Below are positions 1 to 19,637 of a DNA stretch of 19,637 nt, in pieces. Location of the stretch: positions 1-19,637 of the forward strand of contig NW_021824415.1 in the NCBI RefSeq assembly GCF_006345805.1, given 5' to 3'. The position numbers and the translations under genes were made by a program. The DNA comes from Octopus sinensis (taxonomy: Eukaryota). How positions within the stretch are numbered: the stretch's first letter is position 1; every line of letters starts with the position of its first letter. The notes under the pieces are model-generated. The model did no database searches and had not been told where the DNA came from. It worked only from the letters and a program-made list of their open reading frames with translations.

Positions 1-45
1 ATATATACACGTATATATTTATATACATATACATATATTTTATAA

Positions 46-94
<49 letters not shown>

Positions 95-280
95 ACACAT
101 ATATATACATACATGTATATATATGGAAAAAGTCAAGGTTCCTTTTCAACCTTCTACACCCCCCCCCACACACACACACATATATATATTTATATATATA
201 TATACACACACAACCATACACATGCATAACTTATTTATACATACTTGAATATTAGTATATATACATATATCTCTGTATTT
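1..280. repeat. Compound microsatellite (TA)n/(TACA)n/(CA)n
   Basis: Directly visible runs of ta, cata and ca. Confidence 0.95.
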
Positions 281-499
281 ATATGCAGGTGTCTCTGTCT
301 GTCTTTTATATATTCCTGTTTATGCCCGTAGATACATATATTTTCCTAATAGAAATTTATATGTTAACGAGCACTCACATGTATACACAAACGCGCGCAC
401 ACCGACACACCCACACACCTTCGCAGACCAACACAGACAGGCTACATACACAGACATACATACAGACCTCGTTCTTTCCTTTTCTTTCTCTCTGAGTGT

Positions 500-534
500 T
501 TATCTGTCTGTCTATCTGTCTGCTTGTCTCTGTC

Positions 535-574
<40 letters not shown>

Positions 575-575
575 C
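500..575. repeat. (TCTG)n/(TC)n microsatellite
   Basis: Visible tctg and tc runs. Confidence 0.9.
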
Positions 576-782
576 ATACATACACGTATTTAGATTGTTG
601 GGATGAGATTTCTCCGTTTCTACTCTGAGCTTCGTAAAAATCGCCGATAATGTAACTGATTTTTATATTTTATATGTGATCTTTGTAATAAAATCGATAT
701 GTTGGGCAATCATTGATAAAAAAGAAAAAAGAAAAAAGAAAGAATATGAAGAAAAATAGAGTAAGTACACATATAACAGAAT

Positions 783-786
783 ATTA

Positions 787-869
<83 letters not shown>

Positions 870-896
870 TATGTGTGTATGTGTTTGTGTGTATAT

Positions 897-930
<34 letters not shown>

Positions 931-950
931 AATGTCACACACACACACAC
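783..950. repeat. (TA)n-(TG)n-(TA)n-(CA)n microsatellite
   Basis: Visible dinucleotide runs; they explain the YIYI/CVCV ORFs. Confidence 0.95.
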
Positions 951-2337
951 GTATTTATATTTGCACATGCATTTACATAAAGATAATGCACAGCTATGTT
1001 GAAATATCCCTTTTACATATTCTAACCATCTTCACATTTATTACATAGTTTCATATTTAGTACCAATCACGACTAGTTAACACTCTGGCAGCTATTGGAG
1101 GAGAATGAGTACTTTATTTTTTAAGTATATTTTTTAAAAAAATGTTAGTTTACAACGCTTATCTTTTTATAAAAGTGTTTTTTGATAACAATTGTATATT
1201 AATCAAATAGTTTATATTAATCAAATGTTTAAATGTAGTTTATATTTCTTAATAAATTGCTTTTTATTCTCATGTAATCATTGTTGCTGTGGTTGAATCT
1301 GAGCATTTATAAGATGGAGGTATATTGAAATTAAGTAGATTCATTCTTGCACATAAAATTTCTATATGTTCACTTAACAGAATTTTTCTGATATTTTCGG
1401 AATTGATTTTGTTGTCGCTGCAGTGTCATTCGTTTTCCTAGTTATGTATAGATTCTGTTATAGACAGCACATAGGTTGGGGAGGTCAGGTGTTACCCTGC
1501 ATGCAGGCCTCTTTTTCTGCTTCTGCTTTTAGTGTTGAATGTGTCTTTTCTAGTGTTAGTGTGGAGTGTGTCTCTTACGATCAGTCTACCCCAACAGCGA
1601 AGCCAGCAAAGTGAACTATAAGTAGTGAAATCTTTCACTCATGAAAATTTCATATTGCTCTTATTTAAACAAGCCTTTAGCTTGTCTTTGAAATTTTTCT
1701 TTGATTTATCAACAAGGTGTTGACCATTGTAAAGCTATTACTAAGCGATCCTACTAAAGAGATGTGACTGATAAATGGTTACTACATGTCATGGTAATAT
1801 AAAGTTTGATGCCTATATAAGTGAAGATTAAATGCGATTGGAGTTGGTTTGACGGTGGATTTGCAAGTGTGTAATTCTATTTCAGCAAATGACTGAAAGA
1901 ATCTTCTGGGTACCCTGGATATGAAAGATCTCTAGTGTCCGTTCTATCCATGTTCTACCCATACATGAGAGCAGAACCCCCCTAGTGTTCGGTAGATGAA
2001 AACCATGGCACGCAGGATGAAGTGGATGTTTTGAAGGACTCTTCTAACCCACTATACAGTGTCTGGAAAGGGTGTTGCCTTGGTATTTGGATTGTAAGAA
2101 TGTAGCTAGCTTTTAGTGCTGTGCTGAGCAATTGTGTAGATGAGAAAGCGTCGCGCAGTGTGTTGCTGACAGGGAATTTCAGGTCCAATTGTCTATTCGC
2201 TTATATGTTATAATGGCTACTGAAATGGTAATTCAAAGGGACTCCGGAGTGCAATCGTTTCTATCACACTCATTAAGATACTACAGTTCGATGGTCCGTT
2301 CAGATATGCACTCGGTTGTGGTTTGTAACTTTCTAAT

Positions 2338-2487
2338 GTTGAAGAGATGGGTTCCCGCCGAGTTTGAAGCTACGAGTGACCCTCACCTTCTTTTCCATCC
2401 ATTTGCTTAGCAATGTGATCACACACATAAGGAAGATACAGGGCCTGTGTGTCGCATTGTTACACTCCCATTTTTACATTGCGAACT
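2338..2487 (+). repeat. 150-bp segment duplicated at 3062-3211 (in-place copy)
   Basis: Identical to 3062-3211 except for 2 substitutions; offset 724 bp. Confidence 0.95.
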
Positions 2488-2760
2488 CAGATTTTTGTCA
2501 TCCAGTAACTCGACTACTACTTTTGTGTGGAGCTGACAGAAGAGAATCCTGAATGTAGGCAGGCAGCCAGACTTTCCAGGAAAATCCCACAGGAGATACC
2601 TTTTTTATGGTGTCAAAGGCTTTTGACAAATCTTCAGATGTAATGAACAGTTCCCGATGTTGCTCCTCGTATTTCCCTTGAAGCTGTTTTACAATGCTGA
2701 TTATGTTGACTATACCTCAGTCTTTGAAAAAGTTGCAATCAGAAAACAACAAACCGCCCT

Positions 2761-2812
2761 GATATTGATTAAGCCATCAGATATTGATTAAGCAATCTGA
2801 TATTGATTAAGC
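2761..2812 (+). repeat. Three copies of gatattgattaagc at a 19-bp period
   Basis: Copies at 2761-2774, 2780-2793 and 2799-2812, with 5-bp spacers catca and aatct. Confidence 0.95.
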
Positions 2813-3061
2813 CTGTCCTTTGAACATGACCTTGGCCAGGGCCTTACAAGCAATGGACAGGAGCGCTAACCACTCCTGTTGCAGCAAATAAATTTTTTTG
2901 AAAACGATGTTTTTATATGCTCCTCATTCAACACTGATTTAGTGATGAAAATGCTCTTGTGCAACTGTAATGCTCGCATTCAAAATCTCTGCTAAAATAT
3001 TGTCCGTTCTGGGAGATTTTCTAGATTGTTTTGGTGGCAGTACTAACTGCAACAAGAACTG

Positions 3062-3211
3062 GTTGAAGAGATGGGTTCCCGCCGAGTTTGAAGCTACGAG
3101 TGACCCTCACCTTCTTTTCCATCCATTTGCTTAGCAATGTGATCACACACATAAGGAAAATACAGGGCCTGCGTGTCGCATTGTTACACTCCCATTTTTA
3201 CATTGCGAACT
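3062..3211 (+). repeat. 150-bp duplicate of 2338-2487 (out-of-order copy)
   Basis: gttgaagagatggg...attgcgaact; it interrupts otherwise collinear RTE linker sequence. Confidence 0.93.
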
Positions 3212-3977
3212 TTAAGGAGAGGGATAATATGCATTTAACAAAACTCTTCCATGACTATAAATCTACTGGCTGAGACTGGCCAAGGAGCAGGTTGAAGTAT
3301 GTTTCCGAGTATTTTCCTGTTGCTGGTTTTTAATAAATAAATAAATACTATCTAATAACCTGAGAGTTTATCATAGAAGTTGTGCATATCATACCTGTCC
3401 CCAAGCATCTGGATATCTACAGTTTTTGCAATCCATCGTGCATTATTACGGGTGAGCAAGGTGGATATTGCCTCACTTCGAAGTGTTCGCCATTGTTCTT
3501 CCTTCTATTATCTGTGTGATGATAGATGTCCAGAGTAGCTCTGTAGGCCATGCGAAGGTCTTTCGGATGGTTTGTCGATTGTTCTCATAGAACCAGTGTT
3601 GATGTCTTTAGTTTTGGATTTGGATTTCCGAGTTGTTGACATCAAACATTGACTGCTTATTTCACATAAGAATACTGGGCAGTATGCAACGTTTCTGGCT
3701 TTTACGACCACAATGTTGAATGTCCTCACAACTACAGCTTCTTGTCCAATAACTGAAGTAAGGAGAGACCATTTTTAGGTTGAATTTTCTAAGCCTTTTC
3801 CTTACCAGAATGATCTGTTCGTTCTTAGATAAGATTGTTCAGTTTCTCGGGGGCTCAGTGCGGTGCAGTTGTAACGTAATCTCAAGGGCCTCTTTACTGT
3901 TATGCTGAAACGTAGACTTTTGACTAGGAGTTTCCAACACGTTCCAATGTAATTCTGTTTCTGGAGTCTCTGTCGGG

Positions 3978-4194
3978 TCTCTCTCTTTCTCTTTTCTCTT
4001 TTACTTGTTTCAGTCATTTGACTGCGGCCATGCTGGAGCACCGCCTTTAGTCGAGCAAATCGACCCCGGGACTTATTCTTTGTAAGCCCAGTACTTGTTC
4101 TATCGGTCTCTTGCCGAACCGCTAAGTGACGGGGACGTAAACACACCAGCATCGGTTGTCAAGCAATGCTAGGGGAACAAACACAGACACACAA

Positions 4195-4225
<31 letters not shown>

Positions 4226-4396
4226 CATATATACGACAGGCTTCTTTCAGTTTCCGTCTACCAAATCCACTCACAAAGCATTGGTCGGCCCGGGGCTATA
4301 GTAGAAGACACTTGCCCAAGATGCCACGCAGTGGGACTGAACCCGGATCCATGTGGTTGGTTAGCAAGCTACTTACCACATAGCCACTCCTGTGTC
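3978..4396 (-). mobile_element. tRNA-derived SINE, near full length (octopus-type family), with internal TA/TG microsatellite
   Basis: Minus-strand head GACACAGGAG with A-box-like TGGCTATGTGG (4376-4386) and B-box-like GGTTCAGTCCC (4333-4343). It ends in ...GGCCGCAGTCAAATGACTGAAACAAG plus an A/G simple-repeat tail. A second copy lies at 6098-6478. Confidence 0.9.
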
Positions 4397-4685
4397 TAAT
4401 TTATTTTTTTAGGGATACAAGATCTCAAATCTACGTTGCAGAAAAATACACTCGTCCTACGAAGTGCTTTCTATTTTGGAAAAAAAAAAAGATGCGCATT
4501 TATCAGTTTCAGTATTTTTGTAATGACGGAGATAGTCAGTGGGACTCTGTGTGCGTGTGTTGTGGTGGGGAGGGGAGGGGAAAAACGACCAGTAACTTCT
4601 CATAGCTGCACGACGCTACTGCAAATACATTATGTCGGAAATCAACTTAGCGCTGATCTTCGCAGCTTGTCGAGAACATTCAAAG

Positions 4686-4830
4686 ATGTGGTCTCTCACC
4701 ATTTTTCTTCTTCTTCTCTGGACTCATCCACAAAACAGCTGGGCAGTGATTGATAAGTGTCAGGGTTTATCTATCACGGTCAGTCAGCACAATCTATTCC
4801 TGGATTCTTCTGTTGCTTCGAGATCTCTTG
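4686..4830 (+). CDS. Candidate first coding exon of a secreted or membrane protein (signal peptide); product unknown
   Basis: ATG with A at -3 encodes MWSLTIFLLLLWTHPQNSWAVIDKCQGLSITVSQHNLFLDSSVASRSL. It is followed by a canonical G|GTAAGT donor at 4830/4831 (phase 1) and lies in non-repetitive sequence. No homology was recognised and no downstream exon was found. Confidence 0.35.
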
Positions 4831-5029
4831 GTAAGTTATCAAGGAAATGAAAAGAACAGAGTTAATATGTATGACCGAGGGAATGTTGGTGAAAACAAGG
4901 TGCTGTACAGACGGAGAAAATTCACGCACTGGACTGTTTTTTCATTACATACAAAAATCAATCTATAAGCAAGTTTGTTGTATTATTGTATTATTATACA
5001 AGATGCGATGAATCGCATCACACATGTCC

Positions 5030-5275
5030 ACATAAGTGTGCATATATGCACACATATATGTATGCACACACATAAAAACATACACACACACAAACATACC
5101 GGCACACACACACACACGCACACGCAAACATACCAGTACACACACGAATATATAAATTTAAAAATTCAAAAGAGTTATCACATAGTTGTGCCATACATAC
5201 ATACATACATACATACATACATACGTTATGTGTATATATATATATCTATGAATAATTATAGATGTATATATATAC

Positions 5276-5307
<32 letters not shown>

Positions 5308-5340
5308 GCATATATATGTGTGTGTATGTGTGTGTGTGTA
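5030..5340. repeat. (CA)n/(TACA)n/(TA)n/(TG)n microsatellite cluster
   Basis: Visible runs. Confidence 0.9.
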
Positions 5341-5459
5341 TTCGGTAAATTTGTCGACACATTTTTAATACATTGAATAAATTTATTGTTAGACATTATT
5401 TAAAGTTTTATTCGTTCACCAAACATGTCGCATTTTCAAATTATTAACAAATTTACACA

Positions 5460-5685
5460 ATATATGAATATATATGATATATACACATGAAAAACAAGAT
5501 ACAAAATACATATATGTATATATATATGCGTGTATATATACATGTATACATATATATATGTGTGTATATATATATATACATGTATATATATATATATAAA
5601 TGTATACCTCTATATATATATGTATACATGTATATATATATATGCATATATATGTGTGTATATATATATATACATGCATATATAT

Positions 5686-5730
<45 letters not shown>
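5460..5730. repeat. Degenerate (TA)n microsatellite
   Basis: Visible runs with interspersed tg/ca. Confidence 0.92.
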
Positions 5731-5731
<1 letters not shown>

Positions 5732-6097
5732 AGTGAAAAACAAATGAAATTTCCTTTCTAAAATAGAATCACGATACATACAAAGACTAAGGTAAACTGA
5801 AGGAAGAAATAATATTCTAAAATTAGAAATTTCAAGCAAAGACTTTGAAATAATCCACTGCTTCGCGATTTTGATATTCGCTAAAATTTTGAATTCTCGT
5901 AGCGCAATCTTTTTATTTCTTTCGTGGATGTGAAATCTTCTTTCTTAGGGACATATACTGCTCGATTATTTTGTCATTCTTCCTTTTTATTCTTTTCGTT
6001 ATTTCATTTCCTAAAATTTCCAGATAGTTGAATGAAAACACTCGTGTCTTTGAAATATTTTCTTCTCTGTCAATGTGATGGCGTATTTTTCTGTGTA

Positions 6098-6478
6098 TAC
6101 TCTTTTACTCTTTTACTTGTTTCAGTCATTTGACTGCGGCCATGCTGGAGCACCACCTTTAGTCGAGCAAATCGACCCCGGGACTTATTCTTTGTAAGCC
6201 CAGTACTTATTCTATCGGTCTCTTTTGCTGAACCGCTAAGTGACGGGGACGTAAACACACCAGCATCGGTTGTCAAGCAATGCTAGAGGGACAAACACAG
6301 ACACACAAACACACACATACATATATATATATACATATAAACGACAGGCTTCTTTCAGTTTCCGGCTACCAAATCCACTCACAAGGCATTGGTCAGCCCG
6401 GGGCTATAGCAGAAGACACTTGCACAAGTGGGACTGAACCCAGCACCATGTGGCTGGTTAGCAAGCCACTCCTGCGCC
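6098..6478 (-). mobile_element. Second copy of the same tRNA-derived SINE, with small deletions in the head
   Basis: Aligns closely by eye with 3978-4396. Its head is GGCGCAGGAGTGGC. It lacks the tacttaccacatag segment and part of ccaagatgccacgc. Confidence 0.92.
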
Positions 6479-6741
6479 TATAAAAACTTGAAAAAAACCC
6501 CAACATTTTTAGTGATGTATTGTCTCTGGCGATCAAATAGAAGAAACGACGTTTTTATTATTGTCTCTTGATATAATTACTTTACAATGAAATTATTAGG
6601 CAATAAAATCTAAATTACAAGCGATGAATTTATCGCAATATAATTATAGGTAAGAAAATATTCACCAAAGAATTCACAGGAAATCTCACACCTCACACTC
6701 ATACACACGCGAATATGTACGTAAATACTAACATAAATATA

Positions 6742-6744
<3 letters not shown>

Positions 6745-6786
<42 letters not shown>
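6745..6786. repeat. (TA)n microsatellite
   Basis: Visible run. Confidence 0.95.
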
Positions 6787-6790
<4 letters not shown>

Positions 6791-6884
6791 TTATGACTAA
6801 TGTAGGATAAAATTGTTTTTCACAAAAAAATTTTTTTTATCAATGGCCAGCATATCAAAAAATACCATTAAATGTTAAATTTAT

Positions 6885-7128
6885 AAATAATTTACAAAAA
6901 TAAGGGCAAAAGAAAAATTCTAATGCCAAATATGCCGAAAAAAAAGACAAAATTATCAATCACCATTTTAATTTATGCGTCTCGAAATAAACCGATAGAA
7001 ATTTCTAAAAATTCCGTTATTACCGTATAGGTCCCAATTTCGGGGTTAATTCATAAGAATTTTCCATTCTTCAGCAATAAATACGTGAGATATATATGAA
7101 ATAATTTACAAAAATAAGGGCAAAAGAA
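6885..7128 (+). repeat. Perfect 30-bp direct repeat pair (6885-6914 and 7099-7128)
   Basis: aaataatttacaaaaataagggcaaaagaa occurs twice, 214 bp apart. Confidence 0.9.
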
Positions 7129-7140
7129 TATTTATGTATA

Positions 7141-7345
7141 TCTTTTACCTTGTTTCAGTCATTGGACTGCGGCCGTGCTGGGGCACCGGTTTGAAGAACT
7201 TTTAGTCGAGTGAATCGATCCTAGTACTTATTTTTTGAAAAGCCTTAGTACTTATTATTCTATCGGTCTCTGTTTGCTGAACCGCTAGATAACGACGACA
7301 TGAACACACACCAACATCGATCGTCAAGCGGTAGTAGGGGACAAA
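7141..7345 (-). mobile_element. 3' part of a diverged related SINE, truncated by the satellite
   Basis: ttgtttcagtcattggactgcggccgtgctgg...gctgaaccgct...gtcaagcgg...ggggacaaa matches the SINE 3' half. It stops where cacagacaca would follow. Confidence 0.85.
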
Positions 7346-8474
7346 AAAATTTTCGGGAAAAATTTTCAAAAATTTTTGAGGAAGATTTCCCAAAAATTTT
7401 TCAAACATTTTTAGGAAAAATTTTCTAAAAATTTTTGGGTAAAATTTTCTAAAAATTTTTGGATAAAATTTTCTAAAAACTTTTGGTGAAAATTTTCGAG
7501 GAATTTTTGGGTAAAATTTTCTAAAAATTTTTGGGGAAAATTTTCGGTGAAAATTTTCTAAAAATTTTTGGGGTAAATTTTCTGTGAAAATTTTCTAAAA
7601 ATTTTTGGGGAAAATTTTCGGGAAAAATTTTCGAAAAATGTTTGGGTAAAAATTTTCGAACAATTTTTGGAGGAAATTTTCGGTGAAAATTTTCGAAAGA
7701 ATTTGGGTAAAATTTTCTAAAAATTTTTGGTGAAAATTTTCTATGAAAATTTTTATGTAAAATTTTCGGTGAAAATTTACAAAAATTTTTGGGTAAAATT
7801 TTCGGTGATAATTTTTGGTGAAAATTTTCGAACAATTTTTTGGTAAAATTTTCGAAAAAATTTTTGGGTAAAATTTTCGGTGTGAAATTAAAAAAAAATT
7901 TTTTGGTAAAATAAATTTTCGGGAAAAATTTTGTTGAAAATTTTTGAGGAAGATTTCCCCAAAAATTTTTAAAAAAAATTTTTAGGAAAAATAAAAAAAT
8001 TTGTGGGACTAACAAAACTCAAAAATTTTTGAGGAAAATTTTCAAAAAGTTTTTCAAAAATTTTTAAGAAAAATTTTCAAAAATTTTTGTGAAAAAGTTT
8101 CAAAAATTTTTGGAAAATTTTCAAAAGCTTTTTCAAAAATTTTTTCAAAGAAGTTTTCAAAAATTTTTGGGGTAAAATTTTTTCGGAAAATTTTTGGGTA
8201 AAATTTTCGAAAAATTTTTGGGTTAAAATTTTCGAAAAATTTTTGGGTAAAATTTTCGAAAAATTTTTGGTGAAAATTTTCGATCAATTTTTGGGTAAAA
8301 TTTTCAAAATATTTTTTGTTGAAAATTTTCGAAAAGTTTTTAGAAAAATTAAAAAAAAATTTTGTGGAGGAAAGTTTCTGGGAGAAATTTTCGGAAAATT
8401 TTTGATGAAAGTTTTCGAAAAATTTTTGAAAAATTTTTGGGGAAAATTTTCGAAAAATTTTTGGGTACAATTTT

Positions 8475-9085
8475 CGGTGCCAAAATCAAAAAGTATGGAA
8501 AGCCAGCGGTGCCAAAATCACAAAGTATGGAAAGCCAGTGGTGACAAAATCACAAAGTATGGAAAGCCAGCGGTGCCAAAATCACAAAGTATAGAAAGCC
8601 AGCGGTGCCAAAATCAAAAAGTATGGAAAGCCAGCGGTGCCAAAATCACAAAGTATGGAAAGCCAGCGGTGACAAAATCACAATGTATGGAGACCTAGCG
8701 GTGCCAAAATCACAAACTATTGCTTTCCATACTTTGTGGTTTTGGCACCGCTGGCTTTCCATACTTTGTGATTTTGGCAGCTGGCTTCCATACTTTTTGA
8801 TTTTGGCACCGCTGGCTTTCCATACTTTGTGATTTTGGCACCGCTGGCTTTCCATACTTTGTGATTTTGTCACCACTGGCTTTCCATACTTTGTGATTTT
8901 GGCACCGCTGGCTTTCCATACTTTTTGATTTTGGCACCGCTGGCTTTCCATACTTTGTGATTTTGGCACCGCTGGCTTTCCATACTTTGTGATTTTGGCA
9001 CCGATGGCTATCCATACTTGTGATTTTGGCACCGCTGGCCTTCCATACTTTTCCCCAAAAATTTTTTCAAAATTTTCACCGAAAA
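8475..9085. repeat. Palindromic module 1 (32-bp unit cggtgccaaaatcacaaagtatggaaagccag, forward then inverted)
   Basis: About 7.7 forward units, centre ttgctttcca at 8720-8729, then about 10 inverted units. Confidence 0.95.
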
Positions 9086-10296
9086 ACTTTCTAAAAATTT
9101 TTGGGTAAAATTTTCGTTGAAAATTTTCGAAAAATCTTTGGGAAAAATTTTCGGTGAAAACTTTGACAAAATTTTGGGTTGGTAAACTTTTAAGGTGAAA
9201 ATTTTCCAAAAAAATTTGGGAAAAAATTCCCGAAAAACTTTTGGGCAAAATTTTCGGTGTAAATTTTCGAAAAATTTTTGGGTAAAATTTTCTGTGAAAA
9301 TTTTCGAAAAATTTTTGGGTAAAATTTTCGAAATATTTTTGGGTAAAATTTTCGAAAAATTTTTGGGGAAAATTTTCGGTGAAAATTTTCTAAAAATTTT
9401 TGGGGTAAATTTTTGGTGAAAATTTTCTAAAAATTTTTGGGGAAAATTTTCGGGAAAAATTTTCGAAAAATGTTTGGGTAAAAATTTTCGAACAATTTTT
9501 GGAGGAAATTTTCGGTGAAAATTTTCGAAAGAATTTGGGTAAAATTTTCTAAAAATTTTTGGTGAAAATTTTCTGTGAAAATTTTTATGTAAAATTTTCG
9601 GTGAAAATTTTCAAAAATTTTTGGGTAAAATTTTCGGTGATAATTTTTGGTGAAAATTTTCGAAAAATTTTTTGGTAAAATTTTCGAAAAATTTTTGGGT
9701 AAAATTTTCGGTGAAAATTAAAAAAAAATTTTTGGGTAAAATTTTCGGGAAAAATTTTGAAAAATTTTTGAGGAAGATTTCCCCAAAATTTAAAAAAATT
9801 TTTAGGAAAAATAAAAAAAATTTGGGGACTCAAAAAATTTTTGAGGAAAATTTTCAAAAAGTTTTTCAAAAATTTTTAAGAAAAATTTTCAAAAATTTTT
9901 GGGAAAAAGTTTCAAAAATTTTTGAGGAAAATTTTCAAAAGCTTTTTCAAAAATTTTTTGAAAGAAGTTTTCAAAAATTTTTGGGTAAAATTTTCCGTGA
10001 AAATTTTCGGAAAATTTTTGGGTAAAATTTTCGAAAAATTTTTGGGTTAAAATTTTCGAAAAATTTTTGGGTAAAATTTTCGAAAAATTTTTGGTGAAAA
10101 TTTTCGATCAATTTTTGGGTAAAATTTTCAAAATATTTTTTGTGAAAATTTTCGAAAAGTTTTTAGAAAAATTTAAAAAAATTTTGTGGAGGAAAGTTTT
10201 TGGGAGAAATTTTCGGAAAATTTTTGATGAAAGTTTTCGAAAAATTTTTGAAAAATTTTTGGGGAAAATTTTCGAAAAATTTTTGGGTACAATTTT

Positions 10297-10815
10297 CGGT
10301 GCCAAAATCAAAAAGTATGGAAAGCCAGCGGTGCCAAAATCACAAAGTATGGAAAGCCAGCGGTGCCAAAATCAAAAAGTATGGAAAGCCAGCGGTGCCA
10401 AAATCACAAAGTATGGAAAGCCAGCGGTGACAAAATCACAATGTATGGAGACCTAGCGGTGCCAAAATCACAAAGTATTGCTTTCCATACTTTGTGGTTT
10501 TGGCACCGCTGGCTTTCCATACTTTGTGATTTTGGCACCGCTGGCTTTCCATACTTTTTGATTTTGGCACCGCTGGCTTTCCATACTTTGTGATTTTGGC
10601 ACCGCTGGCTTTCCATACTTTGTGATTTTGTCACCGCTGGCTTTCCATACTTTGTGATTTTGGCACCGATGGCTTTCCATACTTTGTGATTTTGGCACCG
10701 CTGGCTTTCCATACTTTGTGATTTTGGCACCGCTGGCTTTCCATACTTTGTGATTTTGGCACCGCTGGCCTTCCATACTTTTCCCCAAAAATTTTTTCAA
10801 AATTTTCACCGAAAA
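10297..10815. repeat. Palindromic module 2
   Basis: Centre at 10478-10487. Confidence 0.95.
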
Positions 10816-11331
10816 ACTTTCTAAAAATTTTTGGGTAAAATTTTCGTTGAAAATTTTCGAAAAAGCTTTGGGAAAAATTTTCGGTGAAAACTTTGACAAA
10901 ATTTTTGGGTAAACTTTTAGGTGAAAATTTTCGAAAAAAATTTTGGAAAAAATTCCCGAAAAACTTTTGGGCAAAATTTTCGGTGTAAATTTTCGAAAAA
11001 TTTTTGGGTAAAATTTCCGGTGAAAATTTTCGAAAAATTTTTGGGTAAAATTTTCGAGGAATTTTTGGGTAAAATTTTCTAAAAATTTTTGGGGAAAATT
11101 GTCGGTGAAAATTTTCTAAAAATTTTTGGTGAAAATTTTCGATCAATTTTTGGGTAAAATTTTCAAAATATTTTTTGTGAAAATTTTCGAAAAGTTTTTA
11201 GAAAAATTTTAAAAAATTTTGTGGAGGAAAGTTTCTGGGAGAAATTTTCGGAAAATTTTTGATGAAAGTTTTCGAAAAATTTTTGAAAAATTTTTGGGGA
11301 AAATTTTCGAAAAATTTTTGGGTACAATTTT

Positions 11332-11784
11332 CGGTGCCAAAATCAAAAAGTATGGAAGCCAGCGTTGCCAAAATCACAAAGTATGGAAAGCCAGTGGTGA
11401 CAAAATCACAAAGTATGGAAAGCCAGCGGTGCCAAAATCACAAAGTATAGAAAGCCAGCGGTGCCAAAATCAAAAAGTATGGAAAGCCAGCGGTGCCAAA
11501 ATCACAAAGTATGGAAAGCCAGCGGTGCCAAAATCACAAAGTATTGCTTTCCATACTTTGTGGTTTTGGCACCGCTGGCTTTCCATACTTTGTGATTTTG
11601 GCACCGCTGGCTTTCCATACTTTTTGATTTTGGCACCGCTGGCTTTCCATACTTTGGATTTTGTCACCGCTGGCTTTCCATACTTTGTGATTTTGGCACC
11701 GATGGCTATCCATACTTTGTGATTTTGGCACCGCTGGCCTTCCATACTTTTCCCCAAAAATTTTTTCAAAATTTTCACCGAAAA
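11332..11784. repeat. Palindromic module 3
   Basis: Centre at 11544-11553; it lacks the caatgtatggagacctag variant unit. Confidence 0.95.
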
Positions 11785-13014
11785 ACTTTCTAAAAATTTT
11801 TGGGTAAAATTTTCGTTGAAAATTTTCGAAAAATCTTTGGGAAAAATTTTCGGTGAAAACTTTGACAAAATTTTGGTTAAACTTTTAGGTGAAAATTTTC
11901 GAAAAAAATTTGGGAAAAAATTCCCGAAAAAATTTGGGCAAAATTTTTGATAAATTTTTGGGTAAAATTTTCGGTGAAAATTTTCGAAAAATTTTTGGGT
12001 AAAATTTTCGAAATATTTTTGGGTAAAATTTTCGAAAAATTTTTGGGGAAAATTCTCGGTGAAAATTTTCTAAAAATTTTTGGGTAAATTTTCGGTGAAA
12101 ATTTTCTAACAATTTTTGGGGGAAAATTTTCGGGAAAAATTTTCGAAAAATGTTTGGGTAAAATTTTCGAACAATTTTTGGAGGAAATTTTCGGTGAAAA
12201 TTTTCTAAAGAATTTGGGTAAAATTTTCTAAAAATTTTTGGTGAAAATTTTCTGTGAAAATATTTATGTAAAATTTTCGGTGAAAATTTTCAAAAATTTT
12301 TGGGTAAAATTTTCGGTGATAATTTTTGGTGAAAATTTTCGAAGAACTTTTTGGTAAAATTTTCGAAAAATTTTTGGGTAAAATTTTTGGTGAAAATTAA
12401 AAAAAAATTTTTGGGTAAAATTTTCGGAAAAATTTTCGAAAAAAATTTGGGAAAAAATTCCCGAAAAACTTTTGGGCAAAATTTTTGATAAATTTTTGGG
12501 TAAAATTTTCGAAAAAAATTTGGGAAAAAATTCCCGAAAAACTTTTGGGCAAAATTTTCGGTGTAAATTTTCGAAAAATTTTTGGTAAAATTTTTAAAAA
12601 ATTTTTGGTGAAAATTTTCTGTGAAAATATTTATGTAAAATTTTCGGTGAAAATTTTCAAAAATTTTTTCAAAAAAGTTTTTCAAAAATTTTTTCAAAAA
12701 TTTTTGGGTAAAATTTTCGGTGAAAATTTTCGGAAAATTTTTGGGTAAAATTTTCGAAAAATTTTTGGGTTAAAATTTTCGAAAAATTTTTGGGTAAAAT
12801 TTTCGAAAAATTTTTGGTGAAAATTATCGATCAATTTTTGGGTAAAGTTTTCAAAATATTTTTTGTGAAAATTTTCGAAAAGTCTTTAGAAAAATTTTTG
12901 AAAATTTTGTGGAGGAAAGTTTTTGGGGGAAATTTTCGGAAAATTTTTGATGAAAGTTTTCGAAAACTTTTGAAAAATTTTTGGGGAAAATATTCGAAAA
13001 ATTTTTGGGTACAA

Positions 13015-13614
13015 TTTTCGGTGAAAATTTTGGAAAAATTTTTTGGGAAAAGTATGGAAGGCCAGCGGTGCCAAAATCACAAAGTATGGAAAGCCAGCGG
13101 TGCCAAAATCACAAAGTATGGAAAGCCAGCGGTGCCAAAATCAAAAAGTATGGAAAGCCAGCGGTGCCAAAATCACAAAGTATGGAAAGCCAGTGGTGAC
13201 AAAATCACAAAGTATGGAAAGCCAGCGGTGCCAAAATCACAAAGTATGGAAAGCCAGCGGTGACAAAATCACAAAGTATGGAAAGCCAGCGGTGCCAAAA
13301 TCACAAAGTATGGAAAGCCAGCGGTGACAAAATCACAATGTATGGAGACCTAGCGGTGCCAAAATCACAAAGTATTGCTTTCCATACTTTGTGGTTCTGG
13401 CACCGCTGGCTTTCCATACTTGTGATTTTGGCACCGCTGGCCTTCCATACTTTGTGATTTTGGCACCGCTGGCTTTCCATACTTTGTGATTTTGGCACCG
13501 CTGCTTTCCATACTTTGTGATTTTGGCACCGATGGCTTTCCATACTTTGTGATTTTGGCACCGCTGGCCTTCCATACTTTTCCCCAAAAATTTTTTCAAA
13601 ATTTTCACCGAAAA
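13015..13614. repeat. Palindromic module 4
   Basis: Centre at 13375-13384. Confidence 0.95.
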
Positions 13615-14459
13615 ACTTTCTAAAAATTTTTGGGTAAAATTTTCGGTGAAAATTTTCGGAAAATTTTTAGTGAAAATTTTCGAAAAATTTTGGGTTAAAA
13701 TTTTCGAAAAATTTTTGGATAAAATTTTCGAAAAATTTTTGGTGAAAATTTTCTGTGAAAATTTTTATGTAAAATTTTCGGTGAAAATTTTCAAAAATTT
13801 TTGGGTAAAATTTTCGGTGAAAATTTTTGGTGAAAATTTTCGAAGAATTTTTTGGTAAAATTTTCGAAAAATTTTTGGGTAAAATTTTAGGTGAAAATAT
13901 GAAAAATTTTTGAGGAAGATTTCCCCAAAATTTAAAAAAAATTTTTAGGAAAAATAAAAAAAATTTGGGGACTCAAAAAATTTTTGAGGAAAATTTTAAA
14001 AAGTTTTTCAAAAATTTTTAAGAAAAATTTTCAAAAATTTTTGGGAAAAAGTTTGAAAAATTTTTGAGGAAAATTTTCAAAAGCTTTTTCAAAAATTTTT
14101 TCAAAAAAGTTTTCAAAAATTTTTGGGTAAAATTTTCGGTGAAAATTTTCGGAAAATTTTTGGGTAAAATTTTCGAAAAATTTTTGGGTTAAAATTTTCG
14201 AAAAATTTTTGGGTAAAATTTTCGAAAAATTTTTGTTGAAAATTTTCCATCAATTTTTGGGTAAAATTTTTAAAAAATTTTTGGTGTGAAAATTTTCGGA
14301 AAATTTTTAGTGAAAATTTTCGAAAAATTTTTGGGGAAAATTTTCGAAAAATTTTTGGGGAAAATTTTCGAAAAATTTTTGGTGAAAATTTTCGAAAAGT
14401 TTTTAGAAAAATTTTTAAAAAATTTTTGGTGAAAATTTTCGAAAAATTTTTGGGTACAA

Positions 14460-15055
14460 TTTTCGGTGAAAATTTTGGAAAAATTTTTGGGAAAAGTATG
14501 GAAGGCCAGCGGTGCCAAAATCACAAAGTATGGAAAGCCAGCGGTGCCAAAATCACAAGTATGGAAAGCCAGCGGTGCCAAAATCAAAAAGTATGGAAAG
14601 CCAGCGGTGCAAAATCACAAAGTATGGAAAGCCAGTGGTGACAAAATCACAAAGTATGGAAAGCCAGCGGTGCCAAAATCACAAAGTATGAAAGCCAGCG
14701 GTGCCAAAATCAAAAAGTATGGAAAGCCAGCGGTGCCAAAATCACAAAGTATGGAAAGCCAGCGGTGACAAAATCACAATGTATGGAGACCTAGCGTGCC
14801 AAAATCACAAAGTATTGCTTTCCATACTTTGTGGTTCTGGCACCGCTGGCTTTCCATACTTTGTGATTTTGGCACCGCTGGCCTTCCATACTTTGTGATT
14901 TTGGCACCGCTGGCTTTCCATACTTTGTGATTTTGGCACCGCTGGCTTTCCATACTTTGTGATTTTGGCACGATGGCTTTCCATACTTTGTGATTTTGGC
15001 ACCGCTGGCCTTCCATACTTTTCCCCAAAAATTTTTTCAAAATTTTCACCGAAAA
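14460..15055. repeat. Palindromic module 5
   Basis: Centre at 14815-14824; it has several shortened units. Confidence 0.95.
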
Positions 15056-15382
15056 ACTTTCTAAAAATTTTTGGGTAAAATTTTCGGTGAAAATTTTCGG
15101 AAAATTTTTAGTGAAAATTTTCGAAAAATTTTTGGGTTAAAATTTTCGAAAAATTTTGGGTAAAATTTTTAAAAAATTTTTGGTGAAAAATTTTCCATCA
15201 ATTTTTGGGTAAAATTTTCAAAAATTTTTTTGTGAAAATTTTCGAAAAGTTTTTAGAAAAATTTTTAAAAAATTTTGTGGAGGAAAGTTTTTGGGGGAAA
15301 TTTTCGGAAAATTTTTGATGAAAGTTTTCGAAAACTTTTGAAAAATTTTTGGGGAAAATATTCGAAAAATTTTTGGGTACAA

Positions 15383-15980
15383 TTTTCGGTGAAAATTTTG
15401 GAAAAATTTTTGGGAAAAGTATGGAAGGCCAGCGGTGCCAAAATCACAAAGTATGGAAAGCCAGCGGTGCCAAAATCACAAAGTATGGAAGCCAGCGGTG
15501 CCAAAATCAAAAAGTATGGAAAGCCAGCGGTGCCAAAATCACAAAGTATGGAAAGCCAGTGGTGACAAAATCACAAAGTATGGAAAGCCAGCGGTGCCAA
15601 AATCACAAAGTATGAAAGCCAGCGGTGCCAAAATCAAAAAGTATGGAAAGCCAGCGGTGCCAAAATCACAAAGTATGGAAGCCAGCGGTGACAAAATCAC
15701 AATGTATGGAGACCTAGCGGTGCCAAAATCACAAAGTATTGCTTTCCATACTTTGTGGTTCTGGCACCGCTGGCTTTCCATACTTTGTGATTTTGGCACC
15801 GCTGGCCTTCCATACTTTGTGATTTTGGCACCGCTGGCTTTCCATACTTTGTGATTTTGGCACCGCTGGCTTTCCATACTTTGTGATTTTGGCACCGATG
15901 GCTTTCCATACTTTGTGATTTTGGCACCGCTGGCCTTCCATACTTTTCCCCAAAAATTTTTTCAAAATTTTCACCGAAAA
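15383..15980. repeat. Palindromic module 6
   Basis: Centre at 15739-15748. Confidence 0.95.
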
Positions 15981-16306
15981 ACTTTCTAAAAATTTTTGGG
16001 TAAAATTTTCGGTGAAAATTTTCGGAAAATTTTTAGTGAAAATTTTCGAAAAATTTTTGGGTTAAAATTTTCGAAAAATTTTTGGATAAAATTTTCGAAA
16101 AATTTTTGGTGAAAATTTTCCATCAATTTTTGGGTAAAATTTTCAAAATATTTTTTGTGAAAATTTTCGAAAAGTTTTTAGAAAAATTTTTAAAAATTTT
16201 GTGGAGGAAAGTTTTTGGCGGAAATTTTCGGAAAATTTTTGATGAAAGTTTTCGAAAACTTTTCAAAAATTTTTGGGGAAAATTTTCGAAAAATTTTTGG
16301 GTACAA

Positions 16307-16908
16307 TTTTCGGTGAAAATTTTGGAAAAATTTTTTGGGAAAAGTATGGAAGGCCAGCGGTGCCAAAATCACAAAGTTTGGAAAGCCAGCGGTGCCAAAA
16401 TCACAAAGTATGGAAAGCCAGCGGTGCCAAAATCAAAAAGTATGGAAAGCCAGCGGTGCCAAAATCACAAAGTATGGAAAGCCAGTGGTGACAAAATCAC
16501 AAATTATGGAAAGCCAGCGGTGCCAAAATCACAAAGTATGGAAAGCCAGCGGTGCCAAAATCAAAAAGTATGGAAAGCCAGCGGTGCCAAAATCACAAAG
16601 TATGGAAAGCCAGCGGTGACAAAATCACAATGTATGGAGACCTAGCGGTGCCAAAATCACAAAGTATTGCTTTCCATACTTTGTGGTTCTGGCACCGCTG
16701 GCTTTCCATACTTTGTGATTTTGGCACCGCTGGCCTTCCATACTTTGTGATTTTGGCACCGCTGGCTTTCCATACTTTGTGATTTTGGCACCGCTGGCTT
16801 TCCATACTTTGTGATTTTGGCACCGATGGCTTTCCATACTTTGTGATTTTGGCACCGCTGGCCTTCCATACTTTTCCCCAAAAATTTTTTCAAAATTTTC
16901 ACCGAAAA
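16307..16908. repeat. Palindromic module 7
   Basis: Centre at 16667-16676. Confidence 0.95.
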
Positions 16909-17667
16909 ACTTTCTAAAAATTTTTGGGTAAAATTTTCGTTGAAAATTTTCGAAAAATCTTTGGGAAAAATTTTCGGTGAAAACTTTGACAAAATTTTTG
17001 GGTAAACTTTTAGGTGAAAATTTTCGAAAAAAATTTGGGAAAAAATTCCCGAAAAACTTTTGGGCAAAATTTTCGGTGTAAATTTCCGAAAAATTTTTGG
17101 GTAAAATTTTCGGTGAAAATTTTCGAAAAATTTTTGGGTAAAATTTTCCGTGAAAATTTTCGAAAACTTTTTGGGTAAAATTTTCGAAATATTTTTGGGT
17201 AAAATTTTCGAAAAATTTTTGGGTAAAATTTTCGGTGAAAATTTTCGAAAAGTTTTTAGGAAAAATTCTGAAAAATTTTCTGGAGGAAAATTTTAAAAAA
17301 TATTTGAGAAAAATTTTCAAAAAATTTTCGGGAAAAATTTTGAAATATTTTTGAGGAAGATTTCCCCAAAATTTTTCAAAAATATTTAGGAAAAATTTTT
17401 AATAATTTTTGGGAAATCTTCCTCAAACATTTTTGAGGAATATTTTCAAAAATCTTTCAAATACTTTTAGGAAAAATTTAAAAAAAGTTTTGAAGACATT
17501 TTTCAAAAAAGTTTGGGGAAAACTTTGAAAAATTTTGTGGGAACTTTTAAAAAACAAAAAAAAAATTTTTAGGAAGAATTTCGAAAAATTTTTGAGGAAA
17601 ATATTCAAAAAAGTATTCAAAAATTTTTGAGGAAAATATTCAAGAAATTTTGCCTCACCGCCTCACC

Positions 17668-18072
17668 AGCGAGGCGGTTACAATAGAATGTATTGACATT
17701 AGCTAAAAAGATGTCCTACTAACCATAGATGCTGTTCCAGACGGTTTCCCAGCCATCCTCCACAAAGCGTGTAAGCATGCCCTGGCAAAACCCCTCAAGA
17801 TTCTCTTCCAGAGCTTTCTTGCGAATGGCAAACTACCAAGCAAGCTGAAGGAGGGAATAATATGCCCAATACATAAAGGGGGAAGTAGAGCAGATGCCAA
17901 AAACTATAGGCCTATCTCTCTGACTTAACACATCAGCAAAGTCATGGAACGGATAGTCAGAAAGAAACTAATCGTATTCCTTGAGGAAAATAACTTGCTG
18001 AGTAATACCCAGCATGGTTTTCGACCAGGTAGGAGCTGCCTGACCCAGCCTTTACAGCATTATGACTGGGTG
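17668..18072 (+). mobile_element. CR1/L2/Jockey-group LINE ORF2 fragment (N-terminal RT region), inactivated
   Basis: Frame +1 reads PDGFPAILHKACKHALAKPLKILFQSFLANGKLPSKLKEGIICPIHKGGSRADAKNYRPISLT*HISKVMERIVRKKLIVFLEENNLLSNTQHGFRPGRSCLTQ. In-frame TAA codons occur at 17704 and 17926. Confidence 0.92.
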
Positions 18073-18097
18073 TTCGTCGTAATAACAGTGTAGCACA

Positions 18098-18150
18098 AAA
18101 CGGCGGTGCATCAGCATGGCCGCAGCTCTGAGCTGAAACTAGAAAAAAAA
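18098..18150 (+). mobile_element. 3'-terminal fragment of a related SINE
   Basis: ggcggtgcatcagcatggccgcagctctgagctgaaactagaaaa resembles the 3' end of the SINE at 3978-4396, in sense orientation. Confidence 0.7.
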
Positions 18151-18279
18151 TATATATGTATATATATATATATAATATATATATATATACGTATATATCA
18201 AATATATTTGTATCCATATATTACATCGATCCAGCCGTCCAATTTTCTTCTCTCCCGCTCTCTCATACACACACGCACA

Positions 18280-18311
<32 letters not shown>

Positions 18312-18365
18312 TTCACTCTGTCTATGTATCAATTTCTTTCTGTCTGTCTTTCCCTCCCTCCTTCT
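18151..18365. repeat. (TA)n, (CA)n, (CTGT)n and (CT)n microsatellites
   Basis: Visible runs. Confidence 0.85.
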
Positions 18366-18808
18366 TAGGAAATGAATTTCCAACGTTGCTTTGTGTACTC
18401 TTCGCGTTACTGTTTTTCTTTTTTTTTCTGTCTAGCCCAGGGCTTCATTATAAATTACAGGCTATATAAGTTTTTTAAAAAAATGTTCAAAGCTAGACTT
18501 AGATAAACTAAAATATTAACATTTAAACACAAATATGAGGCTTGAGAAGATATTGAAACGCGAGTGAATGATAAAATAAAACTAAACACAAAAACAATGG
18601 CGCGCACATATGAGGATGAAAGAGAATGAAAGAAGAGGATAGAAAGAGGAACGAATATATATTTAGAAAAATGTATTAATAAGTAAAACAAAATGTGAAG
18701 TATAAAATGGATGAAAATCTGATGGAAAAAAATGAACGGCTTAACTCACAGTTGAGAAAAATAGAGGAAGTTTATCTTGAATCCAGATTCTTGGTTAATC
18801 TGGCTAAA

Positions 18809-19189
18809 ATTTGGAAGCAATCCGTCGGTTACGACGACGAGGGTTCCGGTTGATCCGATCAACGGAACAGCCTGTTCGTGAAATTAACGTGTAAGTGGCT
18901 GAGCACTCCACAGACACGTGTACCCTTAACGTAGTTCTCAGGGATATTCAGCGTGACACAGGGTGTGACAAGGCCGGCCCTTTGAAATACAGATACAACA
19001 GAAACAGGAAGAGTGAGAGAAAGTTGTGGTGAAAGAGTACAGCAGGGATCACCACCATCCCCTGCCGGAGCCTCGTGGAGCTTTAGATGTTTTCGCTCAA
19101 TAAACACTCACAACGCCCGGTCTGGGAATCGAAACCGCGATTCTACGACCGCGAGTCCGCTGCCCTAACCACTGGGCCATTGCACCTCC
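18809..19189 (-). mobile_element. Full-length tRNA-derived SINE (second family) with a 10-bp target-site duplication
   Basis: Head GGAGGTGCAA, A box TGGCCCAGTGG (19169-19179) and B box GGTTTCGATTCC (19125-19136). The TSD tctggctaaa occurs at 18799-18808 and 19190-19199. Confidence 0.92.
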
Positions 19190-19196
19190 TCTGGCT

Positions 19197-19361
19197 AAAC
19201 TAACCTGTCTGACGACGGTCTAAACCCAGCTCACGTACCTTGTTAGTGGGTGAACAATCCAAGGCTTTGTGAATTCTGCATCGCAGTGATAGGAAGAGCC
19301 GACATCGCAGGCTAAAAAAAGCGACGTTGCTGCGAACGCTTGGCTGTCACAAGCCAGTTAT
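19197..19361 (-). pseudogene. 28S rRNA fragment (domain V, peptidyl-transferase centre/A-loop region)
   Basis: The minus strand reads ATAACTGGCTTGTG...CGATGTCGGCTCTTCCTATCA...GGATTGTTCACCCACTAA...GTGAGCTGGGTTTAGACCGTCGT.AGACAGGTTAGTTT. These are conserved LSU blocks, with scattered differences from the generic metazoan sequence as I recall it. Neither flank continues as rRNA. Confidence 0.92.
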
Positions 19362-19462
19362 TACAAAACAGTAATAAAATACGATTAAAGTTAGAATTAA
19401 AAAATAACATTCTGAGAACATTACTTTACATTTGATGGATATTTGTCCTCATCTTGTTTCTT

Positions 19463-19515
19463 AAGAACACTACGTTTCGGCTGACACTACGTTTCCAGCC
19501 TTCATCAGGTGTCTT
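19463..19515 (-). ncRNA. Minimal type I hammerhead ribozyme motif (Penelope-like-element type)
   Basis: Minus strand: AAGACAC-CUGAUGA-A-GGCUG(12-nt loop)CAGCC-GAAAC-GUA-GUGUUCUU. Stem I is ACAC/GUGU (extendable by AAG/CUU with a bulge), stem II is a perfect 5 bp, and stem III is the palindrome ACGU. Confidence 0.7.
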
Positions 19516-19562
19516 AGGGAAATTTCGAACCTGGGTTTTCATCCCTAAGGTATTTTTCGATA

Positions 19563-19568
19563 TTGTTG

Positions 19569-19637
<69 letters not shown>
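19563..19637. repeat. (TTG)n then (TTA)n microsatellite running to the window end
   Basis: Visible run. Confidence 0.97.

Follow-up and report, generated by a model that had tools for sequence, protein, structure and literature searches.

The window analysed here, a stretch of 19,637 nucleotides from Octopus sinensis (NCBI RefSeq assembly GCF_006345805.1, contig NW_021824415.1, positions 1 to 19,637 of the forward strand), contains a composite tandem array of 10.3 kb (7346–17651, plus strand), in which an A/T-rich satellite encloses seven quasi-palindromic modules built from a 32-bp unit. The array is probably a non-coding composite satellite without sequence-specific function, whose modules go back to a single, two-junction inverted duplication that was later amplified in tandem, with whole units gained or lost afterwards. 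Tool results provide the anatomy of the modules, the mirrored order of their units, the variants private to each arm, the junctions shared by all copies, and a relative in Octopus vulgaris in which the 32-bp arrays occur only in direct orientation.

Anatomy of the array and its modules

The limits given to the array in the initial annotation (7346 and 17651) are correct: Tandem Repeats Finder recovers an A/T-rich satellite, AAAATTTTCGAAAAATTTTTGGG[T], with nested periods of 12/13, 24, and 37 bp, which begins at 7345/7346 and ends at ~17650. The centre motif TTGCTTTCCA is present exactly seven times in the window, always on the plus strand (8720, 10478, 11544, 13375, 14815, 15739, and 16667), against a chance expectation of 0.18 matches; none of 200 shuffled sequences reached seven. 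These exact positions bear out both the seven centres and the spacings of 1758, 1066, 1831, 1440, 924, and 928 bp that had been reported between them. At each centre, the 32-bp unit changes its orientation as described, with CGGTGCCAAAATCACAAAGTATGGAAAGCCAG directly to the left and its reverse complement directly to the right (Tandem Repeats Finder, 92–97% matches). The modules also share the same flanks, GGGTACAATTTTCGGTG on the left and CACCGAAAAACTTTCTAAAAA on the right, each of which occurs exactly seven times.

Each module is a quasi-palindrome of 458–616 bp, whose arms consist of 5–10 copies of the 32-bp unit in opposite orientation and enclose an unpaired loop of 8 nt, TGCTTTCC. The arms measure 186–361 bp, in line with the earlier estimate of ~200–350 bp, and are 93.1–96.2% identical to each other in the best alignments of the seven modules (96.2% over 182 columns in module 2). 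Although the long inverted arms proposed initially are real, the modules are not the near-perfect palindromes they were taken for. The arms are unequal in length in all modules (by 16–144 bp), and the innermost 64 bp at the centre contain 6–10 mismatches in six of the seven modules; module 3, with a single mismatch, has the most nearly perfect centre. The predicted single-stranded DNA folds of modules 7 and 1 have energies of −299.2 and −286.5 kcal/mol, compared with approximately −85 and −84 kcal/mol for shuffled sequences (z = −60 and −38, respectively).

A complete arm opens at its outer end with a head of ~50 bp, TTTTCGGTGAAAATTTTG(G/A)AAAAATTTTTGGG(G)AAAAGTATGGAAGGCCAG, in which the A/T-rich satellite passes into the first partial unit. 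The head is present in all seven right arms and in the left arms of modules 4–7. In modules 1–3, the left head is absent and the flank is joined directly, ...TTTTCGGTG to CCAAAATCA, a loss that is due to a deletion between two CGGTG repeats. The seven modules are composed as follows (the variant unit X is defined in the next section):

8471–9086, module 1: left arm 8471–8720 (250 bp, head deleted), loop 8721–8728, right arm 8729–9086 (358 bp, 10 units and head)
10293–10816, module 2: left arm 10293–10478 (186 bp, head deleted), loop 10479–10486, right arm 10487–10816 (330 bp)
11328–11785, module 3: left arm 11328–11544 (217 bp, head deleted, without X unit), loop 11545–11552, right arm 11553–11785 (233 bp)
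13015–13615, module 4: left arm 13015–13375 (361 bp, full head, 9 units, and 22 nt), loop 13376–13383, right arm 13384–13615 (232 bp, 6 units and head)
14460–15056, module 5: left arm 14460–14815 (356 bp), loop 14816–14823, right arm 14824–15056 (233 bp)
15383–15981, module 6: left arm 15383–15739 (357 bp), loop 15740–15747, right arm 15748–15981 (234 bp)
16307–16909, module 7: left arm 16307–16667 (361 bp), loop 16668–16675, right arm 16676–16909 (234 bp)

The spacers between consecutive modules are 1206, 511, 1229, 844, 326, and 325 bp long and belong, together with the two terminal blocks, to the A/T-rich satellite:

7346–8470, plus strand, A/T-rich satellite block upstream of module 1, G-rich orientation
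9087–10292, 10817–11327, 11786–13014, 13616–14459, 15057–15382, 15982–16306, and 16910–17651, plus strand, other A/T-rich spacer blocks, same G-rich orientation

The GC skew is positive across all spacer blocks, and outside the seven right arms an orientation scan located essentially no C-rich stretches, which indicates that the orientation of the A/T-rich satellite is constant on both sides of every module. The inverted portion of each module is therefore restricted to the right arm including its head. The idea that the 32-bp unit and the 37-bp A/T-rich unit share an ancestor was considered and rejected, because their best alignment shares only CGGTG..AAAAT (p ~0.17 against shuffled sequences).

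Mirrored unit order and arm-private variants

For the unit maps, both arms were read from the outer end towards the centre in one orientation and cut into 32-bp units, with A denoting a unit with C15A, T a unit of the form TGGTGA..., X a unit with five substitutions, and c a unit with A12C. In this notation, the left arms of modules 5–7 consist of the head, the series n n A n T n A n X, and 22 nt to the centre, and the reverse complement of the right arm of module 1 consists of the head and the series t n n A n T n A n c. Eight variant units (n n A n T n A n) are thus arranged in mirror image in the left arms of modules 5–7 and the right arm of module 1. Their identical order on opposite strands implies that one of the arms was copied from the other in inverted orientation. 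A simple inversion was rejected, because the inverted segment repeats the head and the unit order of the left arm.

Other variants are private to one arm. The X unit occurs exclusively in left arms (six of the seven modules), whereas the centre unit with A12C is found only in right arms but in all seven modules. These arm-private variants are older than the amplification.

Two conserved junctions

Both the inner and the outer junction are identical in all seven modules. The inner junction reads ...CACAAAGTAT-TGCTTTCC-ATACTTTGTG..., with a stem that begins at GTAT/ATAC and a spacer of 8 nt; seven of the eight bases in this loop represent right-arm sequence without a partner in the left arm. The outer junction and the left boundary are located as follows:

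9077–9102, plus strand, outer junction (J2) of module 1, CACCGAAAAA-CTTTCT-AAAAATTTTT; identical 21-mers start at 10807, 11776, 13606, 15047, 15972, and 16900
8463–8479, plus strand, left boundary motif GGGTACAATTTTCGGTG; identical copies start at 10285, 11320, 13007, 14452, 15375, and 16299

At the right end of each module, the inverted head terminates in ...CACCGAAAAA, and after CTTTCT the forward satellite resumes at AAAAATTTTTGGGTAAAATTTTCG, which places the strand switch within the self-complementary decamer AAAAATTTTT. The left side has no discontinuity: the flank, ...CGAAAAATTTTTGGGTACAATTTTCGGTGAAAATTTTGG..., carries the satellite in phase into the head, and in modules 4–7 the left motif GGGTACAATTTTCGGTG passes in satellite phase into the head TTTTCGGTGAAAATTTTGGAAAAATTTTTGGGAAAAGTATGGAAGGCCAG.

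A combination of this kind is the hallmark of an inverted duplication: a snap-back join with a short spacer on one side, and on the other a second small palindrome at which the sequence returns to its former orientation. The modules represent neither a reciprocal inversion nor a pair of independently grown arrays. Inverted repeats of 5–9 bp with spacers of 3–12 bp are able to drive palindromic duplications (reviewed in PMC7999016), and replication template switching at short inverted repeats leads to inverted copies bounded by these repeats (PMC10766183).

A direct-only relative in Octopus vulgaris

The open reading frame (ORF) that spans the junction at 11219–11722 had no match in a first search against 5.8 billion proteins; an exhaustive, profile-free protein search yielded one informative match (P0070, 68% identity). 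The matching protein (CAI9724350.1) is annotated as a "hypothetical predicted protein" of O. vulgaris and reads as a series of 32-bp units followed by A/T-rich satellite. The genomic locus that encodes it, here termed L005, harbors a related array:

OX597819.1:69,381,551–69,404,821, O. vulgaris chromosome (69.39 Mb), locus L005, with an array of ~8 kb at ~9240–17400
9381–9492, 9993–10108, 11539–11745, 14010–14124, and 15566–15772 of L005, plus strand, 32-bp arrays

The L005 array combines the same A/T-rich 12/24/37-bp satellite with five 32-bp arrays of 3.5–6.5 units, all in forward orientation, and its units are 86–92% identical to those of the window. The GC skew of the L005 array is positive throughout, and no inverted repeats were found in it above the ~70–79% background given by the quasi-self-complementary satellite itself.

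The boundary between head and array, AAAAGTATGGAAGGCCAG followed by CGGTGCC, is common to both arms in the window and the three O. vulgaris arrays that were aligned with them. In this alignment, AAAA(A)GTATGGAAGGCCAG is followed by CGGTGCCAAAATCAC in the left arm of module 7, in the reverse complement of its right arm, and in the three O. vulgaris arrays. The O. vulgaris arrays possess a natural 3′ end, with GCCAT followed by TATTGGGTAAAATTTTCG; this end (GCCATTATTGGG) was not found in the window, where every forward 32-bp array runs into a fold-back centre instead. The composite satellite is older and wider than the window locus and exists in a direct-only form. The presence of the same head-to-array boundary in a relative whose 32-bp arrays are all direct points to the palindromic modules as the derived state.

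Several features of L005 were noted besides. The spacer before the first 32-bp unit is TTTTCCCCAAAAA in O. vulgaris (L005 9370–9385, 9985–10000, and 11525–11540) and TTTTTGGGGAAAA in both arms of the window modules (e.g., 16330–16345). The two sequences are mutual reverse complements, give or take one base between copies, and their difference looks like a small inversion of the spacer between an A-run and a T-run, which would be a further footprint of strand switching. L005 also contains a third component, a non-simple segment of ~230 bp (9715–9935 and 11 further copies; marker CCATATAAYGAATATGCT), which occurs 12 times and is not found in the window. This segment is continuous with the unique left flank of the L005 array, suggesting that the array may have grown by tandem duplication of local sequence. 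The 78-amino-acid protein CAI9724350.1 (L005 10001–13271) reads as a translation of 32-bp units, A/T-rich satellite, and the repeated ~230-bp segment; it matches nothing in Pfam, and its annotation as a protein is very probably artefactual.

Amplification of the modules

As had been proposed from the first inspection, the modules are copies of one ancestral foldback module that was amplified together with the surrounding satellite rather than inserted seven times. The evidence comprises the same centre, the same flank motifs, and the same arm-private variants in all or nearly all modules, the mosaic structure of the flanks, and the presence of duplicated blocks. The spacing of the modules ranges from 924 to 1831 bp, and a self-BLAST of the array detected duplicated blocks of up to 1944 bp with 94–98% identity. 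Examples are 14115–16048 versus 15063–16976 (1944 bp, 95.8%), 7465–8656 versus 9297–10478 (94.1%), 12696–13888 versus 15988–17184 (94.2%), and 12696–13753 versus 15063–16120 (97.7%). Modules 5–7 form a periodic block of ~925 bp.

The core regions around the centres are 93–99% identical between modules, with the closest similarities among modules 4–7 (98–99%). The 300-bp flanks are 69–96% alike and show a mosaic pattern, in which the right flanks of modules 1, 2, 3, and 7 group together, as do those of modules 5 and 6, and the left flanks of modules 1, 2, 4, 6, and 7 form another group. Such a pattern would be produced by repeated unequal exchange within the spacer satellite.

The modules fall into two clades. 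Modules 1–3 have a deleted head and the centre unit c, whereas modules 4–7 have the full head, a centre unit with an additional A9G (c′), a g unit, and shortened right arms (t n n g n c′). In all cases, arm lengths vary by whole units while both junctions stay fixed.

Origin of the quasi-palindromes

We infer the following sequence of events, including the enzymatic mechanism of the inverted duplication. The older family would have consisted of the A/T-rich 12/24/37-bp repeat and short direct 32-bp arrays, a state still seen in O. vulgaris. In the lineage of the window locus, a single inverted duplication would then have added, back-to-back, a second copy of approximately ten 32-bp units and of the ~50 bp of A/T-rich satellite next to them. 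The inner junction would represent a join of the snap-back type, with a stem starting from GTAT/ATAC and the 8 nt of TGCTTTCC left unpaired, and the outer junction would mark the point, at the self-complementary decamer AAAAATTTTT, where the forward satellite resumed; the two-junction pattern would be the product of replication template switching or of fold-back priming at short inverted repeats. Unequal exchange in the A/T-rich spacers may subsequently have amplified the quasi-palindrome of ~0.7 kb and its flanks to seven copies, the arms gaining and losing whole 32-bp units and three modules losing their left head by the deletion between CGGTG repeats.

Several points weigh against this scenario. 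Because of the X unit and the outer t unit, the register of the two arms is shifted by one unit, and the scenario thus needs a minimum of two additional unit changes before the amplification. The central T of the inner junction (GTAT-T-GCTTTCC) is templated by neither arm. The L005 array is not orthologous to that of the window but a paralogue or relative, with different flanks, the extra component of ~230 bp, and 81–92% identity. Finally, the absence of function is an absence of evidence only.

Our best estimate is that the modules are neutral structural DNA, from which hairpin or cruciform potential, replication slippage, and instability of arm length are to be expected. The palindromes are plausibly tolerated because their centre is unpaired, mismatches lie near it, and the arms are unequal.

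Alternative explanations

It is unlikely that the modules go back to a Foldback-type, non-autonomous DNA transposon with arms of 32-bp subrepeats, which was inserted once and then amplified or from which the entire satellite was derived. Foldback elements have long inverted ends, composed of outer flanking, tandem-repeat, and inner domains, together with a middle domain and target-site duplications of 8–10 bp (PMC4079207), and their hallmark, long inverted arms made of variable numbers of tandem subrepeats (PMC4079207), is shared by the octopus modules. Such elements are also known to seed satellites, as in the case of Tetris in Drosophila virilis (PMC4079207). Moreover, a direct repeat of 15 nt (AAAAATTTTTGGGTA) is located 3 nt to the left and 6 nt to the right of every module, and excision of the module with one copy of this repeat would restore an uninterrupted satellite. 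However, AAAAATTTTTGGGTA is the satellite's own unit and is expected there also without transposition, so that it provides no information on a target-site duplication. A left terminus is missing, because the outer ~50 bp of the left arm are satellite in phase with the flank, with two mismatches to the satellite consensus. There is neither a distinct terminal flanking domain nor a middle domain, and the spacer satellite is G-rich on the plus strand on both sides of all modules, i.e., not inverted. The two flank motifs are common to all seven copies, and neither the window nor the one external locus revealed a copy whose flanks are independent; at that locus, head and array belong to a direct satellite and not to the end of a transposon. 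A transposase-like ORF was likewise not seen in the window. The kinship with Foldback (FB-type) elements that the initial annotation had suggested thus reduces to a single common trait, the inverted arms built from subrepeats.

Selection for the symmetry itself is very unlikely. By this explanation, the dyad would be maintained because it forms non-B DNA that organizes (peri)centromeric chromatin or because it encodes a long hairpin RNA for a small-RNA pathway. The inversion sites are conserved in all seven modules while the arm lengths vary, a pattern that led the authors of a study on Tribolium satellites to suggest a structural significance (PMC13081366), and the predicted hairpins are very stable. 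Yet, conserved junctions are explained equally well by recent amplification. In addition, the array spans only 10.3 kb, is flanked on both sides by debris of short and long interspersed nuclear elements (SINEs and LINEs), and is not part of a large satellite block in the window. The relative in O. vulgaris is entirely devoid of palindromes, and the window array has no match in Rfam.

That the palindromes are artefacts of long-read sequencing or assembly (foldback or chimeric reads, missed adapters) is very unlikely, even though foldback chimeras are a known failure mode of long reads and tandem repeats are difficult to assemble: such an artefact should produce a single perfect mirror at an arbitrary point and remain in reverse orientation for the rest of the read, whereas here the same junction recurs seven times, the arms are 4–7% diverged, unequal in length, and carry private variants common to most or all modules, a second and equally conserved junction returns to the forward orientation after 232–358 bp, and the modules differ from each other by 1–7% in their cores and by whole-unit changes.

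Flanks of the array

The window is eukaryotic and rich in microsatellites and retroelement debris. The array is bounded within the window on both sides, by SINE debris at its left and LINE debris at its right edge:

7141–7345, plus strand, left edge, 5′ half of a SINE-like dispersed repeat, truncated third copy
17700–18080, plus strand, right edge, reverse-transcriptase fragment of a retrotransposon without long terminal repeats (non-LTR), with an in-frame stop (Pfam RVT_1, E = 1.8e-7)

Full copies of the SINE-like repeat (~380 bp), which contains an internal CA/TA microsatellite, are located at 3989–4373 and 6100–6470 and are 91% alike. The third copy stops, and the satellite begins, exactly where the full copies hold this microsatellite. 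The best named relative of the reverse-transcriptase fragment is a protein of Octopus bimaculoides (66% identity). The motif variant GAGGAAGATTTCCC is found at both edges of the array (on the left at 7378–7395), suggesting that the edges keep an older variant of the repeat. The degenerate right edge also comprises a weak inverted repeat of 100 nt (17287–17490), which contains GAGGAAGATTTCCCC and GGGAAATCTTCCTC and is 72% complementary with a spacer of 4 nt; its strength is approximately that of the background for the quasi-self-complementary A/T-rich satellite.

Microsatellites are particularly dense at 1–124, 781–930, 5066–5728, 6733–6794, 18149–18352, and 19561–19637. They are of the AT, TG, CATA, CTGT, and ATT types and include one (AT)n of 223 bp and, at the end of the window, a (TAT)n that continues beyond it. 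A segment of 150 bp is duplicated with 98.7% identity at a distance of 724 bp (2338–2487 and 3062–3211). The translation of the minus strand at 1400–3300 holds a motif resembling reverse transcriptases (DLSKAFDTI); the single fragment tested had no Pfam match.

Near the right end of the window, a 160-nt fragment of 28S ribosomal RNA (rRNA) on the minus strand (19202–19361) corresponds to positions 2826–2984 of the Rfam model LSU_rRNA_eukarya (148 bits). An interpretation of the array as the intergenic spacer of ribosomal DNA was rejected, because this match is an isolated fragment beyond the retrotransposon fragment and not part of a ribosomal DNA unit. Directly beside it, a repeat on the minus strand (18800–19200) has a 5′ part that appears tRNA-like by eye; ARAGORN calls no tRNA in it. 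The region 18821–18932 matches positions 2421–2532 of L005 at 81%, which shows that the repeat is dispersed; it is possibly a SINE, part of which derives from rRNA.

Coding potential and further searches

A coding function of the array was rejected, because its long ORFs, including all those of at least 80 amino acids, are translations of the repeats and independent of frame; the satellite-derived P0070, the only product of this kind compared with Pfam, has no match there. The exact product of an array ORF of 231 amino acids is not on record. The only matches of an ORF from the A/T-rich satellite were two contigs of ~1.8 kb from seawater metagenomes (L001 and L002). They were dismissed as relatives, because they contain a 13-bp (GGTGAAAATTTTC)n minisatellite in otherwise unrelated sequence. 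This minisatellite (930–1110 of L001 and 1410–1625 of L002) resembles part of the A/T-rich unit, and the two contigs share nearly identical sequence.

Neither the exact nor a degenerate form of the 32-mer had a match among metagenomic, viral, and prokaryotic genome contigs; these collections hold essentially no cephalopod DNA, so that the negative result carries little weight. Likewise, the array matches no family in Rfam, a 14-mer of the unit occurs in no full-text paper, and literature searches found no paper describing satellite DNA of octopus or other cephalopods. It is possible that the satellite already has an entry in a repeat library (Dfam, Repbase).

Significance

Satellites of cephalopods are almost undescribed. 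The locus provides an internally dated example of a minisatellite inside another satellite that gains a long palindrome by a two-junction inverted duplication; the palindrome then spreads within a higher-order repeat, and its arms erode by whole-unit changes while the junctions stay fixed. Alongside Tribolium, it constitutes a second, phylogenetically distant case of dyad symmetries of ~0.6 kb that are tolerated and amplified in tandem DNA. Both junctions are diagnostic, and any octopus assembly or set of reads can be screened for them, using the 28-mer CACAAAGTATTGCTTTCCATACTTTGTG for the centre and CACCGAAAAACTTTCTAAAAATTTTTGGG for the outer junction. In practice, this is a region where assemblers and repeat annotators may misbehave, and the sequence of at least one predicted protein of O. 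vulgaris (CAI9724350.1) appears to derive, at least in part, from translated satellite.

There is a slim chance that the conserved inversion sites and hairpin modules represent a functional feature of octopus chromosomes, either as non-B DNA at (peri)centromeres or as a small-RNA locus based on long hairpins. If true, this would extend the idea that centromeric satellites are characterized by dyad symmetry rather than sequence to the cephalopods, in parallel to the proposal for Tribolium. A previously undescribed cephalopod element of the foldback type that seeded the satellite is less likely than such a function.

Comparison with known systems

Amplified palindromes of this kind are less exceptional than the initial annotation, which called them unusual, had assumed, because Tribolium satellites with inverted segments of ~300–470 bp and conserved inversion sites have been described (PMC13081366). 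The TmSat2 satellite of T. madens has a palindrome-like monomer of ~600 bp derived from imperfect inverted repeats of ~300 bp, the satellite of T. brevicornis (1061 bp) contains inverted segments of ~470 bp, and the "macro-dyad" arrays of T. madens change their orientation at highly conserved inversion sites (PMC13081366). These satellites with inversely oriented subunits are the closest described architecture. As in Tribolium, the octopus module is a tandemly repeated entity with two inversely oriented segments built from shorter subunits; common to both are also the palindrome-like size of 0.5–0.6 kb, imperfect arms, a conserved inversion site, a large predicted hairpin, and a function that has not been demonstrated. 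However, the arms of the octopus modules are 32-bp minisatellite arrays, whereas those of Tribolium consist of subunits of ~110 bp, and the octopus modules are separated by 325–1229 bp of a second, A/T-rich satellite of constant orientation. Moreover, the octopus array extends over 10 kb as seen here, compared with megabases in Tribolium, and its host is a cephalopod.

Foldback elements (Drosophila FB, Galileo, and Tetris; PMC4079207, PMC3573991) resemble the octopus modules in their long inverted arms with variable tandem subrepeats and in their link to the formation of satellites (Tetris TIR-220). They differ in that the left arm of the octopus modules is continuous with the host satellite and in that a direct-only relative exists in O. 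vulgaris.

A third parallel concerns duplications arising by fold-back or snap-back priming, template switching, and events of the origin-dependent inverted-repeat amplification (ODIRA) type. They share with the octopus modules (PMC7999016, PMC10766183, PMC11724301) a head-to-head junction whose arms are separated by a few unpaired nucleotides (8 nt in the present case), a second junction at a short self-complementary sequence, and a mirror-image order of variants. The duplications described there are mostly somatic, experimental, or disease-related and range from kilobases to megabases, whereas the event in octopus comprises only ~0.35 kb, has been fixed in the germ line within a satellite, and was amplified sevenfold.

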